DNA of 64,000 nucleotides, taken from contig SMSO01000005.1 in the NCBI GenBank assembly GCA_004764695.1, forward strand, positions 248,001 through 312,000, written 5' to 3'. Shown here piece by piece: positions 1 through 20,392 of this stretch. Source of the stretch: Schizochytrium sp. TIO01 (taxonomy: Eukaryota > Protista > Bigyra: Labyrinthulomycetes). The notes beneath the pieces are model-generated. The model did no database searches. It was not told the origin of the DNA and worked only from the letters and a program-made list of their open reading frames with translations. The stretch's first letter is position 1; every line of letters begins with the position of its first letter. A program made the position numbers and the translations under genes.

Positions 1-3000
1 GTCAGAGGGCGCCAAGGCACTGGCTGCGGCGCTGAACGAGAACCAGTCACTGACATCTCTTGAGTAAGTTGGTTGTCTGTCTTAGCACCTCGTGGAAAGG
101 TTTGCTTGCTTGCTTGCTTGCTTGCTTGCTTGCTTGCTTGCTTGCTTGCTTGCTTGCTTGCTTGCTTGCTTGCTTGCTTGCTTGCTTGCTTGCTTGCTTG
201 CTTGCTTGCTTGCTTGCTTGCTTGCTTGCTTGCTTGCTTGCTTGTATATGGATGGGGCTTGTTGCTTGGTTTTCTTGTTTGCTTGCTATTTCGTGCTATA
301 GATCGGTTTACCGTGCTATTCTGTGCTATGTGTTGCTGCGGCGTGGTGGTCTGTGTTGGTTGGTGATTTGTTTGCATGTTGCCTGCGAATGCTGGTTGGG
401 ATCGACAGTTTCGACTGCGATTGTGTGTTAGAATCAAGATCTCACAATGCGCAAGATGCCAGAGCACGATACATGAAATGCTGAAACCCAAGCCAACCCA
501 AAGCCAAGCTCGATGACTGACGTTCATGCATGTATGCTTGCTCGCTTGCATGAGTTGCTTGCCATAATTCAATCAAATGAACAGTCTTGGTTACAACACT
601 ATCGGGTCAGAGGGCGCCAAGGCACTGGCTGCGGCGCTGAAAGAGAACCAGTCACTGACATCACTATCGTAAGTTGGTTGTCTGTCTGAGCACCTCGTGG
701 AATGGCTTGCTTGCTTGCTTGTATATGGATGGGGCTTGTTGCCAAGTTTTTCTTGTTTGCTTGTTATTTCGTACTATAGATCGGTTTACCGTGCTATTCT
801 GTGCTATGTGTTGCTGCGGCGTGGTGGTCTGTGTTGGTTGGTGGTTTGATTGCATGTTGCCTGCGAATGCTGGTTGGGATCATCAGTTTCGACTGCGATT
901 GTGTGTTTGAATCAAGATCCAACAATGCGCAAAATGCCAGAGCACGACACATGAAATGCTGAAACCCAAGCCAACCCAAAGCCAAGCTCGATGACTGACG
1001 TTCATGCATGTATGCTTGCTCGCTTGCATGAGTTGCTTGCCATTATTCAATCAAATCAACAGTCTTTGTTACAACACTATCGGCTCAGAGGGCGCCAAGG
1101 CACTGGCTGCGGCGCTGAAAGAGAACCAGTCACTGACATCACTTGAGTACGTTGGTTGTCTGTCTTAGCACCTCGTGGAAAGGCTTGCTTGCTTGCTTGT
1201 ATATGGATGGGGCTTGTTGCCTGGTTTTCATGTTTGGTTGCTATTTCGTACTATAGACTGGTTTACCGTGCTATCCTGTGTTATGTTTTGCTGCGGGGTG
1301 GTGGTCTGTGTTGGTTGGTGGTTTGTTTGCATGTTGCCTGCGAATGCTGGTTGGGATCGTCATTTTCGACTGCGATTGTGTGTTTGAATCAAGATCCAAC
1401 AATGCGCAAAATGTCAGAGCACGACACATGAAATGCCGAAACCCAAGCCAACCCAAAGCCAAGCTCGATGACTGACGTTCATGCATGTATGCTTGCTCGC
1501 TTGCATGAGCTGCTTGCCATTATTCAATCAAATCAACAGTCTTCAATGGAACAACATCGGCTCAGAGGGCGTCAAGGCACTGGCTGTGGCGCTGAAAGAG
1601 AACCAGTCACTGACATCACTTGAGTAAGTTGGTTGTCTGTCTTAGCACCTCGTGGAAAGGCTTGATTGCTTGCTTGTATATGAGGCTTGTTTCCTGGTTT
1701 TCTTGTTCGGTTGCTATTTTGTACTATGGATTGGTTTATAGTGCTATCCTGTGCTATGCTTTGCTGCGGCGTGGGGGTCTGTGTTGGTTGGTGGTTTGAT
1801 TGCATGTTGCCTGCGAATGCTGGTTGTGATCATCAGTTTCGACTGCGATTGTGTGTTTGAATCAAGATCCAACAATGCGCAAAATACCAGAGTACGATAC
1901 ATGAAATGCTGAAACCCAAGCCAACCCAAAGCCAAGCTCGATGACTGACGTTCATGCATGTATGCTTGCTCGCTTGCATGAGTTGCTTGCCATTATTCAA
2001 TCAAATCAACAGTCTTTTTGACAACAAGATCGGCTCAGAGGGCGCCAAGGCACTGGCGGCGGCGTTGAAAGAGAACCAGGCACTGACAGCACTATCGTAA
2101 GTTCGTTATCTGTCTTAGCACCTCGTGGAAAAGCTTGCTGGCTTGCTTGCTTGCTTGCTTGCTTGCTTGCTTGCTTGCTTGCTTGCTTGCTTGCTTGCTT
2201 GCTTGCTTGCTTGCATATAGATGGGGCTTGTTGCCCGGTTTTCATGTTTGCTTGCTATTTCGTGCTATAGACTGGTTAACCGGGCTATCCTGTGCTATGA
2301 TTTGCTGCGGCGTGGTTGTCTGTGTGGGGGGTGGTGATTTGTTTGCATGTTAATTGCGATTGCGGGTTGCGATCGTCAGTTTCCACTGCTGTTGTGTGTT
2401 TGAATCAAGATCCAACAATGCGCAAAATACCAGAGCACGATACATGAAATGCTGAAACCCAAGCCAACCCAAAGCCAAGCTCAATGACTGACGTTCATGC
2501 ATGTATGCTTGCTCGCTTGCATGCGTTGCTTGCCACTATTCAATCAATACAACAGTCTTTGGAAGAACAACATCGGCGATGAAGGCGCCAAGGCGCTGGC
2601 TGCGGCGCTGAAAGAGAACCAGTCACTGACATCACTTGTGTAAGTTGCTTGTCTGTCTTAGGACCTTGTGGAAAGACTTGCTTGCTTGCTTGTATATGGA
2701 TGGGGCTTGTTGCCTGGTTTTCATGTTTGGTTGCTATTTCATTCTATAGACTGGTTTACCGTGCTATCCTGTGCTATGTTTTGCTGCGGGGTGGTGGTCT
2801 GTGTTGGTTGGTGGTTTGATTGAATGTTGCCTGCGAATGCTGGTTGGGATCGTCAGTTTCGACTGCGATTGTGTGTTTGAATCAAGATTCAACAATGCGC
2901 AAAATGTCAGAGCACGACACATGAAATGCCGAAACCCAAGCCAACCCAAAGCCAAGCTCGATGACTGACGTTCATGCATGTATGCTTGCTCGCTTGCATG

Positions 3001-18200: not shown

Positions 18201-20392
18201 GCGCTTCGTCGCATTCGCCCAGAAGCTGAAGTAAAGCATAAAAGCATTAGAAGAAGCATTGCTCGCACAATCCGAAAATCAGCTAATCGTGTCAGTAGTA
18301 GGTTGTCGGGAAGACCGGCAAGCAGATCTGTGCCACGAGATGCTCCGGCAAACGAAGAAGTTCTGGGAAACGAAGCTGAGGTTGCCAGGCGTTTTGAGTT
18401 GCCAAGAGATGATAAGGAAATGATTCAGAAGGCCTCTGGTGTTGATGCATCTCTAGATTTTGATTTGAGCTTTACAATTTGGGACTACGGAGGTCAGGAG
18501 GTGTTTTATGCTCTACATCACATATTTCTTACCAATATGGGAATTTATCTCGTTGTTTTTGATATGCAGGAGCTCTTAAATGATCAGTCAAAATCTAACG
18601 CTGTTGAGTACTTGCGCTTCTGGCTGAACAGTATTAAACTCTATGCACCTGAGTCATCAATTATAATGGTCGGAACTTACCTCGATAAAATTAGAGATGA
18701 GAAAAGCCTCGACACAATTGCACGAGTTCTACGGGAAGATGTTCGCATTGGAGATTACAGAAGGTGCCTAGTTTATAATCCTAACGGTCGACCGTTTTAC
18801 GAATTAGATAACAGTAGTCCTGATTTGAATCGCGCAGCGCAATTACGCCAGGTAATTGTGGATGAAGCTATGAAACAAGATTACGTTAAGCAGAAAGTGC
18901 CTCTTGCTTGGCTCAAAGTACACGAGGATTTACTTCAGCAAAAGAAATCATATCTCATGTATGATGATGTGGTCAATCTTGCAGCTCCGTACGGTCGCAG
19001 TCACGAGGATGTGGATGAGATGTTACTCTACTTCCATAAGCTTGGCGTTGTGGTTCACCTGTGTAGCACTGAGGCCCTGCAACGTGTGGTCATCTTGGAA
19101 CCGCGGTGGCTTCTTAATAAGCTTGCTCGAGTTATCGCTGATGACATGCATGTACATCAGATGTATCGAAATCGTGATTTGAGGAATGCAGATGTGGAGG
19201 AGGACTTTGATTGTTTGCGTCGCGATGCAATCGCAACACGTAGCATCCTTGCGTTTCTGTGGGAAGGTGAAGAAGTCGACTATCTTATTAGTTTTATGCG
19301 AGAGAATTTGCTACTGAGTGACTGGGTGTACAATCGCAAGGCAAAAGAGTCTGAGTACCTTGTCTCAGGTCTATTGTCAGACTCGCAGCGCCATGTGGAC
19401 ACGAGCAAATTCAAGCCTGGATTGACTTGTGAACTCGATTTCTCTGAATTTTACCTACCCAACGGTTTTTTTCAGCGTCTTGTCGCACAGTGTGCTGCGC
19501 ATGCAGCAAGACCTGATATAAGAGGGACAGCGCCTCTTGTACCACCTGCTCTAGATCGACACACAGCGAGACTCACATTTGGACGTAGCAAGTTTCTTTT
19601 GCGTGTACAAGTCCACTCAATTCGTATTGAAATTCACCAGAGCGCAAAGACCCCAGCAACTGTAATCAAATTTTTGATCTCGATGTTTCGAGAGCAGGAG
19701 AAAGTTCTCTTTAAGCACCTCAAGTGGGATCTCATCCTTATTGGCCCGAATTCAAAAGAAAGAATTGTTTACAATGCTCTTGAAAAGGCACGGAGTTCAG
19801 GCGAAACAGAGATTGTTAGTGTGGATGGTGATATAGTATCTGTTGCAGAATTTGCACCATTTTTTGACGAAAATATTGACCGCCTTGATACAGATGAGGA
19901 TGGAACGAATCTGCCATTTTACGATATTCCAAAATTGAGGGATGACGAGGAAAGCCACGTGTTTTGAAGCCATGTAGAGGCCACTGGAGGCAGTCTCGCT
20001 GAGTTGTTGTCCGAGAAGTTATCTCATCGAGAACTCAAAGTTTGGATTTCTCAAGAGTACCGTACCATGAAAACTTGAACCAGGACGCAGTGAGGTCTGG
20101 CTTACAGAAGTTACACGTAGATGTCTTTGTGTTAACGAAAGGTATATTTGCTAGTTCTGCTGTGTGTATGGAGTTTCAAGCCGCAGTTGACGCAAACAAG
20201 CCCATTCTTCTCATGTACGAGTCTGATTCTCTGCGCAGTAGGTTTGCACCATTCAGTGAGTACATCAATACTATTCCCGCGTTTTATCCTGATCTCTTCA
20301 AAGATATAGAATCATTGCCAGTGCGGCGCAGATATTATGAGCAAGAGACCTTTTACTCAGAGTTGATTCGCCGTCATAATCAGACCTACTAA
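15257..20392 (+). pseudogene. LRR-ROC-COR-(TIR) gene, copy B; complete 7-exon model, TIR disrupted
   Basis: Exon 1 is 15257-15321 (ATG, MSNHPTVVDALRDLRQGATSL, ends in phase 2 before gtaggt). LRR exons: 15515-15598, 15963-16046, 16436-16519, 16920-17003, 17398-17481. Terminal exon starts at 17876 with an intact P-loop GQGAAGKTS. TGA at 19965-19967 replaces the TTG of copy A at the TIR start, and a GTACC duplication at 20057-20066 shifts the frame. It could still encode LRR-ROC-COR ending at 19967. Confidence 0.88.
15384..17890 (+). repeat. Tandem exon+intron array B (5 LRR exons)
   Basis: Same unit as array A with B-specific intron variants (agcagctcgtg versus agcacctcgtgg) and (TGCTA)n expansions, e.g. 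17596-17629. Confidence 0.95.

Follow-up and report, generated by a model that had tools for sequence, protein, structure and literature searches.

A tandem repeat of about 480 bp that resembles a satellite opens a 64,000-nucleotide stretch of the Schizochytrium sp. TIO01 genome (contig SMSO01000005.1, positions 248,001 to 312,000; hereafter the window), and this locus raises the question of whether such a repeat may be the exons and introns of a gene. A sequence-only reading of the same DNA had proposed that the repeat encodes the leucine-rich repeat (LRR) part of intracellular immune receptors, which continue into Roc, COR and TIR domains. Our analysis indicates that the window probably contains a tandem pair of paralogous labyrinthulomycete LRR-Roc-COR-TIR genes (gene 1 and gene 2), both of them recently broken copies within a living and diversifying family.

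The repeat is organized in the same way in both genes. Tandem Repeats Finder reports a 477-nt period at positions 228-8005 (16 copies, 80% matches) and a 473-nt period at 15654-17879 (4.7 copies). According to the predicted exon/intron structure, a unit of ~477 bp consists of one 84-nt exon and an intron of ~393 nt, as had been suggested earlier for the ~480-bp repeat, and the suggestion holds at the sequence level: an AG (CAG in nearly all cases) stands before each 84-nt open stretch, and GTAAGT or GTACGT comes after it. These cassettes are open only in the frame in which their first base completes a split codon, which corresponds to phase 2 on both sides and agrees with the phase assigned to all junctions before. 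Gene 1 has 17 full cassettes and a partial one within the window, and gene 2 has five. The 5' end of gene 1 is located in the DNA of the same contig 1.5-1.7 kb upstream of the window, where a 65-nt exon 1 (ATG, 21 codons + 2 nt, donor GTAGGT) and three further cassettes are present. Counted over the whole genes, the arrays comprise 21 cassettes in gene 1 (four lying or starting upstream of the window) and 5 in gene 2, a difference that had been put at 18+ versus 5.

Individual cassettes encode individual repeats. All five single exons tested match the Pfam family LRR_6, the ribonuclease inhibitor (RI) type of LRR, with E-values from 1.4e-5 to 2.2e-4 (two of the five score above the gathering threshold and three just below it). 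The repeat period is exactly 28 residues, as in RI-type repeats, and the assignment of one 28-residue RI-type LRR to each exon is thereby confirmed. In single-exon searches the start of the LRR_6 profile falls in the exon before, which puts the exon border within the beta-strand. In three young arrays, those of gene 1, gene 2 and their closest intact paralogue on contig C30, the AG and GT borders are present in 41 of 41 cassettes; 39 of these are 84 nt long and two are 87 nt long, while the introns range from 350 to 521 nt. Both dinucleotides are kept by all 26 cassettes of the window genes, and the chance of this happening at the observed intron divergence is ~0.003. The sum of 65 + n x 84 + 2,512 nt, representing exon 1, the cassettes and the terminal exon, is divisible by 3 for both n = 21 and n = 5. 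The claim that the arrays run in frame onto a ROC-COR-TIR exon is therefore upheld by the length arithmetic, but the terminal frames themselves are interrupted by stops and a duplication.

The terminal exons of both window genes carry the Pfam domains Roc (E = 7e-18 in gene 2 and 1.5e-12 in gene 1), COR-A (about 2e-13), located directly C-terminal of Roc, and TIR_2 (2.8e-8). Together with LRR_6, these are the matches that had been anticipated for a profile search with LRR, Roc, COR and TIR_2. Neither NACHT nor NB-ARC was matched by Pfam in the terminal exons scanned, which returned only the Roc, Ras, COR-A and TIR families. Within Roc we located the P-loop (GQGAAGKT), the DxxG motif (WDYGGQ) and a G4-like motif (GTYLD), the latter being of the T-x-L-D type, as in LRRK2. 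The AlphaFold2 (AF2) model of the intact 836-residue terminal exon, based on 27 homologues, has a mean local confidence (pLDDT) of 85.6 and a predicted template-modelling score (pTM) of 0.82. It aligns to the Chlorobium tepidum LRR-Roc-COR structures (6hlu and 3dpu), LRRK1 and LRRK2 over ~660-750 alignment columns, and the Roc-COR-A-COR-B part of all four matches the model. A basic insertion of ~100-130 residues, predicted with low confidence, separates the P-loop/switch I region from the DxxG motif; it occupies residues ~100-195 of the terminal exon (~9085-9370 and ~18175-18460 in the window), and its position is conserved across the family.

The separate TIR model (AF2, pLDDT 90.8) has its best Foldseek matches in Caenorhabditis elegans TIR-1 and human SARM1 (E = 8e-9 to 1e-7; TM score about 0.8 on the target), followed by plant TIRs and AbTir. 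A Glu in the motif CMEF (residue 98 of the 170-residue fragment) lies within helix C (residues 93-104), and at least 90% of 38 homologues have it. Motif and helix position, rather than a residue-level superposition, suggest that it is equivalent to SARM1 E642. The terminal exon would accordingly encode a SARM1-like TIR domain with a catalytic-type Glu, for which NAD+-cleaving (NADase) activity is predicted.

Searching the whole genome (64 Mb in 37 contigs) revealed that the window genes are not isolated. The open reading frame (ORF) of gene 1 has 34 genome matches, 20 of which have stop-free frames of at least 845 residues. Roc, COR-A and TIR_2 are all present in 9 of 10 sampled terminal exons, and 84-nt phase-2 LRR exons were found at all sampled loci with a usable upstream flank. 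On this basis the family includes at least 20 apparently intact loci. The C30 paralogue has a terminal exon 96.6% identical to that of gene 1 at the nucleotide level, a matching first exon and an array of 15 cassettes, of which 13 measure 84 nt and two, both in frame, measure 87 nt. We considered whether gene 1 and the C30 gene might be alleles or haplotigs and rejected this: their outer flanks differ, with histone H2A beside the C30 gene and the decayed copy beside gene 1. The duplicated promoter module of the C30 paralogue has this histone H2A gene (C30:8214300-8216400, locus L038) immediately on its upstream side.

Intact paralogues at a greater distance, with protein identities of 76%, 52% and 30% to the gene 1 ORF, also have 84-nt phase-2 LRR exons, and their introns are short (52-770 nt) and unrelated. 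A further subfamily is built of 385-bp units with 301-nt introns that are 96.6% identical across loci on different contigs; it was sampled only from the 1.5-kb flanks of the loci. The loci concerned (L008, L009, L011, L012, L013 and L022; contigs C35, C30, C36, C32, C13 and C34) in many cases lie near contig ends. Homology between the 477-bp and 385-bp introns is limited to the first ~35 nt and the last ~110 nt. The complete 478-bp unit is present only in gene 1, gene 2 and the C30 gene within this genome; nearly all of its 346 genome matches cover the exon alone at 87-96% identity, so that the cassette occurs at more than 300 places. Outside the genome, the Roc-COR-TIR exon has its best named relatives among the proteins of Hondaea fermentalgiana, with at most 49% identity. 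A metagenome scan with a single protein gave no match, and with an alignment it gave five short contigs without useful upstream sequence.

Neither window gene, as sequenced, is a working receptor, and the earlier reading as a candidate receptor system does not hold for these two genes. In gene 1 a TAG follows the LRR array and a TAA follows the P-loop, which is flanked by these two stops and thus separated from the rest of Roc. In gene 2 a TGA stands at the start of TIR, and the remainder of this domain is put out of frame by a tandem duplication of 5 bp (positions are given in Table 1). A third copy (C4:242828-244191, ~4 kb upstream of the window) is 5'-truncated and contains stops; with this remnant the window genes form a cluster of three tandem paralogues. 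Two ways of explaining the lesions away were rejected. A variant genetic code does not fit, as the lesions use TAG, TAA and TGA and the genes terminate on TAA. Nor does an extra intron concealing the stops of gene 1: the intact C30 paralogue is open straight across that stretch.

The time of the damage can be judged from the substitution pattern. When terminal-exon changes are polarised with gene 2 as the outgroup, the gene 1 lineage has 20 synonymous and 26 non-synonymous changes, corresponding to a non-synonymous to synonymous rate ratio (omega) of 0.38 (p=0.001 against neutrality); omega of the intact C30 lineage is 0.39. Private changes in the LRR scaffold of gene 1, counted with the variable positions of the cassettes excluded, comprise 23 synonymous and 20 non-synonymous ones against a neutral expectation of 27:73 (p=2e-4). 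The disabling thus appears to be recent, having come about through nonsense mutations and one 5-bp duplication after long purifying selection, and the window copies are dying members of a birth-and-death family.

The same lesions could be read differently, namely, that the truncated products are kept as decoys, adaptors or regulators of full-length receptors. Up to the first stop, gene 1 would give a 631-residue LRR-only protein and gene 2 an 858-residue LRR-Roc-COR protein without TIR. Nonsense-mediated decay should spare both mRNAs, as the first stop of either gene falls in its final exon. Such retention is consistent with the intactness of all 26 cassette exons and their splice sites even though the terminal exons are hit, with purifying selection on the LRR scaffold of gene 1, and with the lesions falling exactly at domain borders (past the array, past the P-loop and in the first TIR strand). 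However, omega downstream of the gene 1 stops is like that of the intact paralogue, and therefore recent loss fits better than long-term truncation. In addition, damage is accumulating (two stops in gene 1, a stop plus a frameshift in gene 2), and the copy adjoining them is clearly decayed. We therefore regard the retention of truncated products as possible but unlikely.

Diversity within the cassettes is concentrated at eight nucleotides, exon positions 5-10 and 83-84. At these positions nucleotide diversity (pi) is 0.59 in gene 1, compared with 0.06 in the exon scaffold and 0.077 in the introns, in agreement with the earlier remark that a few exon codons are hypervariable. The corresponding values for C30 are 0.53, 0.009 and 0.021, a 25-fold excess over the introns. 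No 6-column window of the introns has pi above 0.24. The variable residues are encoded by the junction codon and the two codons after the first Leu, with a lesser share from the residue after Asn, and are rich in G, R, W and Y. In the geometry of RI-type LRRs such positions face the concave beta-sheet, and the 3-4 variable residues per repeat may thus represent a concave, predicted binding surface. Relaxed constraint would yield diversity at the level of introns; the observed excess therefore points either to strong diversifying selection or to old alleles that were retained while their flanks were homogenised.

This bears directly on a second alternative, according to which the family performs ordinary ROCO signalling (cytoskeleton, trafficking or development), the variable residues reflect relaxed constraint or partner diversification, and TIR is a scaffold. 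The closest solved structures are indeed LRRK1/2-type ROCO proteins, and the characterized eukaryotic ROCO proteins (LRRK1/2, Dictyostelium Roco) are not known to be pathogen receptors. Yet relaxed constraint predicts equal diversity in exons and introns, whereas that of the variable positions is 7-25 times above the introns. The TIR domain is nearest to NADase-type TIRs and keeps the catalytic-type Glu. Moreover, the large copy number, tandem clusters and pseudogenes follow the pattern of a receptor family, as in brown-algal ROCO genes. Taken together, these considerations make ordinary signalling improbable.

Between close paralogues of the family, the arrays differ radically in cassette number and order. 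The cassette order of gene 1 is not collinear with that of C30, although their terminal exons differ by just 3.4%. Identical 6-nt variable alleles (encoding WN, SD, WS, GY and LG) are paired with both forms of a block that lies 12 nt downstream and differs at 3 nt, which places exchange breakpoints inside exons. As for the introns, they had been described as nearly identical and as homogenised platforms for recombination. Their pairwise identity is in fact 92.4% in gene 1 and 89.2% in gene 2, about equal to that of the exon scaffold. Among the derived intron variants of gene 1, 39% are common to at least two units, and doubletons occur in adjacent units more often than expected (12 of 37 versus about 3.5). 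Gene 1 shares 33 derived intron variants with gene 2 and 7 with C30. Intron divergence from the consensus (0.043 in gene 1, 0.096 in gene 2 and 0.014 in C30) is close to the synonymous divergence of the respective terminal exons (0.036, 0.087 and 0.016). Because old paralogues keep the exon architecture with unrelated introns, the similarity of introns is best seen as a consequence of the recent amplification of tandem units. This similarity is surely used in unequal exchange, but the idea of introns as dedicated platforms is not supported, given the unrelated introns of old paralogues, the breakpoints inside exons and divergence at about the synonymous level.

Some features of the introns deserve separate mention. 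A (TTGC)n/(GCTT)n microsatellite of 6 to 36 copies is located ~36 nt into each intron (e.g. 102-244, 2133-2214, 5068-5130 and 5601-5625), and its expansion explains most of the intron length variation. In both arrays (1-8785 and 15515-17875) the last ~110 nt of the introns have pi of 0.03-0.05, two to three times below that of the 5' half, and represent the only long part that can be aligned with the intron of the 385-bp family. The low diversity of this 3' end could reflect a signal for splicing, or else a tract of conversion next to the hypervariable beginning of the exon. Rfam detected no RNA family in positions 1-21000, hence no intronic small nucleolar RNA, and no extra copy of the 71-nt exon scaffold was found at >=68% identity on either strand of the whole window.

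Mosaic cassettes invite a more radical explanation: somatic or very rapid germ-line rearrangement in which the genome's more than 340 LRR cassettes would be templates for conversion and broken arrays would be donor libraries. This would be comparable to the assembly of variable lymphocyte receptors (VLRs) in lampreys, to antigenic variation or to the use of immunoglobulin (Ig) pseudogenes in chickens. Compatible with it are the mosaic alleles, whose breakpoints fall within exons, the hypervariable islands in otherwise 98%-identical units, the abundance of exon copies genome-wide and the intact arrays of broken genes. Against this, hypervariable alleles are almost never common to the 477-bp and 385-bp families (1 of 23 against 16), few derived intron variants are common to the C4 and C30 arrays, and a single assembly cannot reveal somatic change. 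We consider rearrangement of this kind extremely improbable. We also think it very improbable that templated short-tract conversion of cassettes proceeds far above the mutation rate, possibly somatically, with the broken genes as donor libraries for intact receptors; if true, a unicellular stramenopile would possess VLR-like or Ig-pseudogene-like diversification. Finally, the probability that the repeat is a non-coding satellite with accidental LRR-like frames is close to nil: although repeats of 366-529 bp in Aurantiochytrium limacinum have been described as non-coding spacers without GenBank similarity, here a constant 84-nt length contrasts with variable introns, splice sites are canonical, single exons match LRR_6, the scaffold has an excess of synonymous changes, the array joins Roc-COR-TIR in frame, and the architecture is repeated at more than 20 loci with different introns.

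The explanation that we favour, recently broken members of a diversifying LRR-Roc-COR-TIR family, suggests the following scheme. The gene would consist of a 65-nt exon 1, a variable number of 84-nt cassettes specifying one 28-residue RI-type LRR each, and a 2.5-kb exon for Roc, COR-A/COR-B and TIR. Unequal exchange between tandem units, together with short-tract gene conversion, would lengthen, shorten and reorder the arrays in the germ line, and diversifying selection would hold 3-4 residues per repeat different. The intact proteins might act as cytosolic sensors in which the LRR solenoid binds a ligand, the Roc-COR GTPase and dimerisation switch relays the signal, and self-association of TIR leads to NAD+ cleavage or a nucleotide signal. 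This would be the logic of NOD-like receptors (NLRs) and SARM1 with Roc-COR replacing the STAND ATPase. By analogy with such systems, it is plausible that the family represents innate immune receptors.

Several points weigh against this scheme. Neither window gene is able to make the full protein. Splicing at the borders of the 84-nt stretches is predicted from sequence and from selection signatures, and the immune role is argued by analogy only; ROCO proteins of Dictyostelium and animals have cell-biological jobs. The agreement between intron divergence and synonymous divergence of terminal exons means that there is no sign of strong ongoing homogenisation. At the same time, hypervariable codons beside near-identical flanks are hard to obtain through point mutation and selection alone, and therefore recombination or conversion would be needed, a mechanism that we infer from the pattern itself.

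Table 1. Predicted parts of gene 1 and gene 2, their lesions and the stretch between them (window positions)
Feature	Position	Strand	Remarks
Gene 1 LRR cassette array, in-window part	1..8785	+	partial exon 1-63, 17 full 84-nt exons, introns 350-521 nt
Gene 1 full cassette exons, first nine	585-668, 1063-1146, 1540-1623, 2013-2096, 2556-2639, 3033-3116, 3513-3596, 3990-4073, 4467-4550	+	
Gene 1 full cassette exons, last eight	4948-5031, 5481-5564, 5951-6034, 6427-6510, 6905-6988, 7398-7481, 7875-7958, 8309-8392	+	
Gene 1 terminal exon, 2,512 nt (last partial LRR, Roc, COR-A/COR-B, TIR)	8786..11297	+	two in-frame stops
Gene 1 in-frame TAG, just past the LRR array	8850..8852	+	Glu codon in both paralogues
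Gene 1 Roc P-loop GQGAAGKT	8943..8966	+	
Gene 1 in-frame TAA, just past the P-loop	8997..8999	+	Tyr codon in both paralogues
Gene 1 TIR domain, from the FLSH motif	10872..11294	+	catalytic-type Glu codon 11076-11078 in CMEF
Intergenic stretch	11298..15256	.	two duplicated modules of the gene unit: 'downstream' (~2.5 kb), 'upstream' (~2.2 kb)
Gene 2 exon 1, 65 nt (ATG, 21 codons + 2 nt, donor GTAGGT)	15257..15321	+	homologous to gene 1 exon 1; intron 1 is 193 nt
Gene 2 LRR array	15515..17875	+	exons 15515-15598, 15963-16046, 16436-16519, 16920-17003, 17398-17481; introns 364-400 nt
Gene 2 terminal exon (Roc-COR-TIR)	17876..20392	+	92.3% nucleotide identity to gene 1 terminal exon; interrupted at TIR start
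Gene 2 in-frame TGA	19965..19967	+	in place of Leu of the FLSH motif, TIR start
Gene 2 5-bp tandem duplication (GTACC)	20057..20061	+	frameshifts the remaining TIR domain

The first exons reveal no evident signal peptide. The two modules that make up the intergenic stretch match the flanking DNA of both gene 1 and the C30 paralogue with ~89-91% identity. The 'downstream' module contains a 177-residue WD40-like ORF fragment (12316-12849, minus strand) with weak matches to WD40 beta-propellers; given the WD40-Roc-COR-TIR proteins of Hondaea, it may be a relic of another family member.

Other coding sequences lie in the remainder of the window. Four tandem paralogues of a major facilitator superfamily (MFS) sugar transporter are located on the plus strand (35989-37944, 41226-42992, 53998-55659 and from ~63400 to the window end); the one of the four that was tested matches Pfam Sugar_tr with E = 4e-86. 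Positions 27840-30908 encode a 1,022-residue fusion of a FAD monooxygenase/geranylgeranyl-reductase-like domain and a flavodoxin-FAD-NAD reductase. Its top two relatives are eukaryote-like (59% and 55%), and the others come mostly from bacteria (about 41-43%, e.g. Sterolibacterium), with a single chytrid sequence among them (47%). A horizontal origin of this gene is possible. The adjacent ORFs 22922-25354 (810 residues) and 25369-27216 (615 residues) match no Pfam family; they probably belong to a single gene that a short intron or a stop divides.

How do these genes compare with known systems? The nearest named relatives, dozens of automatically annotated Roc-COR-TIR proteins of Hondaea fermentalgiana, some with N-terminal LRR_6 and some with WD40, are known from protein predictions. 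Roc-COR-TIR is also present in transcript-derived MMETSP proteins, including those of Mucochytrium quahogii, and therefore this domain order exists at the RNA level in relatives. Our literature search found no paper on an LRR-Roc-COR-TIR family in labyrinthulomycetes. The A. limacinum repeats mentioned above were published as non-coding 'LORE-TEARS'; these 'non-coding' 366-529-bp repeats of one thraustochytrid genome may be genes. Cassette arrays are invisible to ORF-based and many eukaryotic gene callers. In Chondrus crispus, TPR-ROCO-TIR proteins likewise have Roc-COR followed by TIR, with TPR repeats in place of LRRs.

The order LRR-Roc-COR-A-COR-B is shared with the solved ROCO proteins (C. 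tepidum Roco, LRRK1 and LRRK2), from which the present family differs by the insertion in Roc and by having TIR rather than a kinase as the output. SARM1 and TIR-1 are the closest TIR structures and the helix-C Glu is kept, but sequence identity is ~20%, Roc-COR stands instead of ARM-SAM, and activity is a prediction here. Vertebrate NLRs and ribonuclease inhibitors share RI-type repeats of 28/29 residues, modular exons that preserve the frame and a fixed border inside the beta-strand. In human NLRP3 the LRR exons are 171 bp long and contain two RI-type repeats, with the border fixed within the beta-strand (PMC6642158), so that in formal terms the resemblance is close. The predicted layout of a cytosolic LRR sensor, an NTPase switch and a death/TIR-like effector is also NLR-like. 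In contrast to vertebrate NLRs, however, each exon (84 nt) carries a single repeat and not two (171 nt), Roc-COR stands in place of NACHT, and the LRRs are N-terminal rather than C-terminal. Besides STAND NLRs and SARM1, the family would represent a third way of connecting a sensor made of repeats with a TIR effector. With lamprey VLRs it has in common LRR cassettes, hypervariable concave-face residues and a mosaic cassette composition; unlike in VLRs, a normal germ-line gene contains the cassettes as its exons, and splicing is predicted to join them. Since the eight variable nucleotides of a C30 cassette are ~25 times more diverse than the 400 nt of intron next to them, such arrays are a clean natural experiment in the diversification of repeat receptors.

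The closest parallel is provided by the brown-algal LRR-ROCO genes of Ectocarpus and Saccharina, in which each exon encodes one 24-residue LRR in 72 nt and introns are in phase 2 (Zambounis et al. 2012, PMC3341825; Front Plant Sci 2024, PMC11378527). The sequence-only reading had described these units correctly and rightly set the 28-residue version apart from them. Both hosts are stramenopiles, and both groups of genes have one LRR per exon, phase-2 introns, an array upstream of Roc-COR, tandem clusters with pseudogenes, variable LRR residues and a proposed role as pathogen receptors. The differences are nevertheless substantial. The repeats here are of the RI type (LRR_6, 84 nt/28 residues), whereas those of brown algae belong to a 'LxxLxLxxNxL GxIP'-like type (72 nt/24 residues), and the C-terminal TIR has no counterpart in the plain brown-algal LRR-ROCO proteins. 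Inactivated and reverse-strand LRR exons inside introns are a hallmark of Ectocarpus (PMC3341825), but neither relic nor reverse cassettes are present within the 64-kb window. Also unlike the brown-algal genes, the youngest arrays are clean head-to-tail repeats with homologous introns of ~393 nt. If our interpretation is correct, it would extend exon-cassette LRR-ROCO receptors beyond brown algae to heterotrophic stramenopiles, with the RI-type repeat found in animal NLRs, and would be the first connection of such receptors with a SARM1-like TIR as the output.

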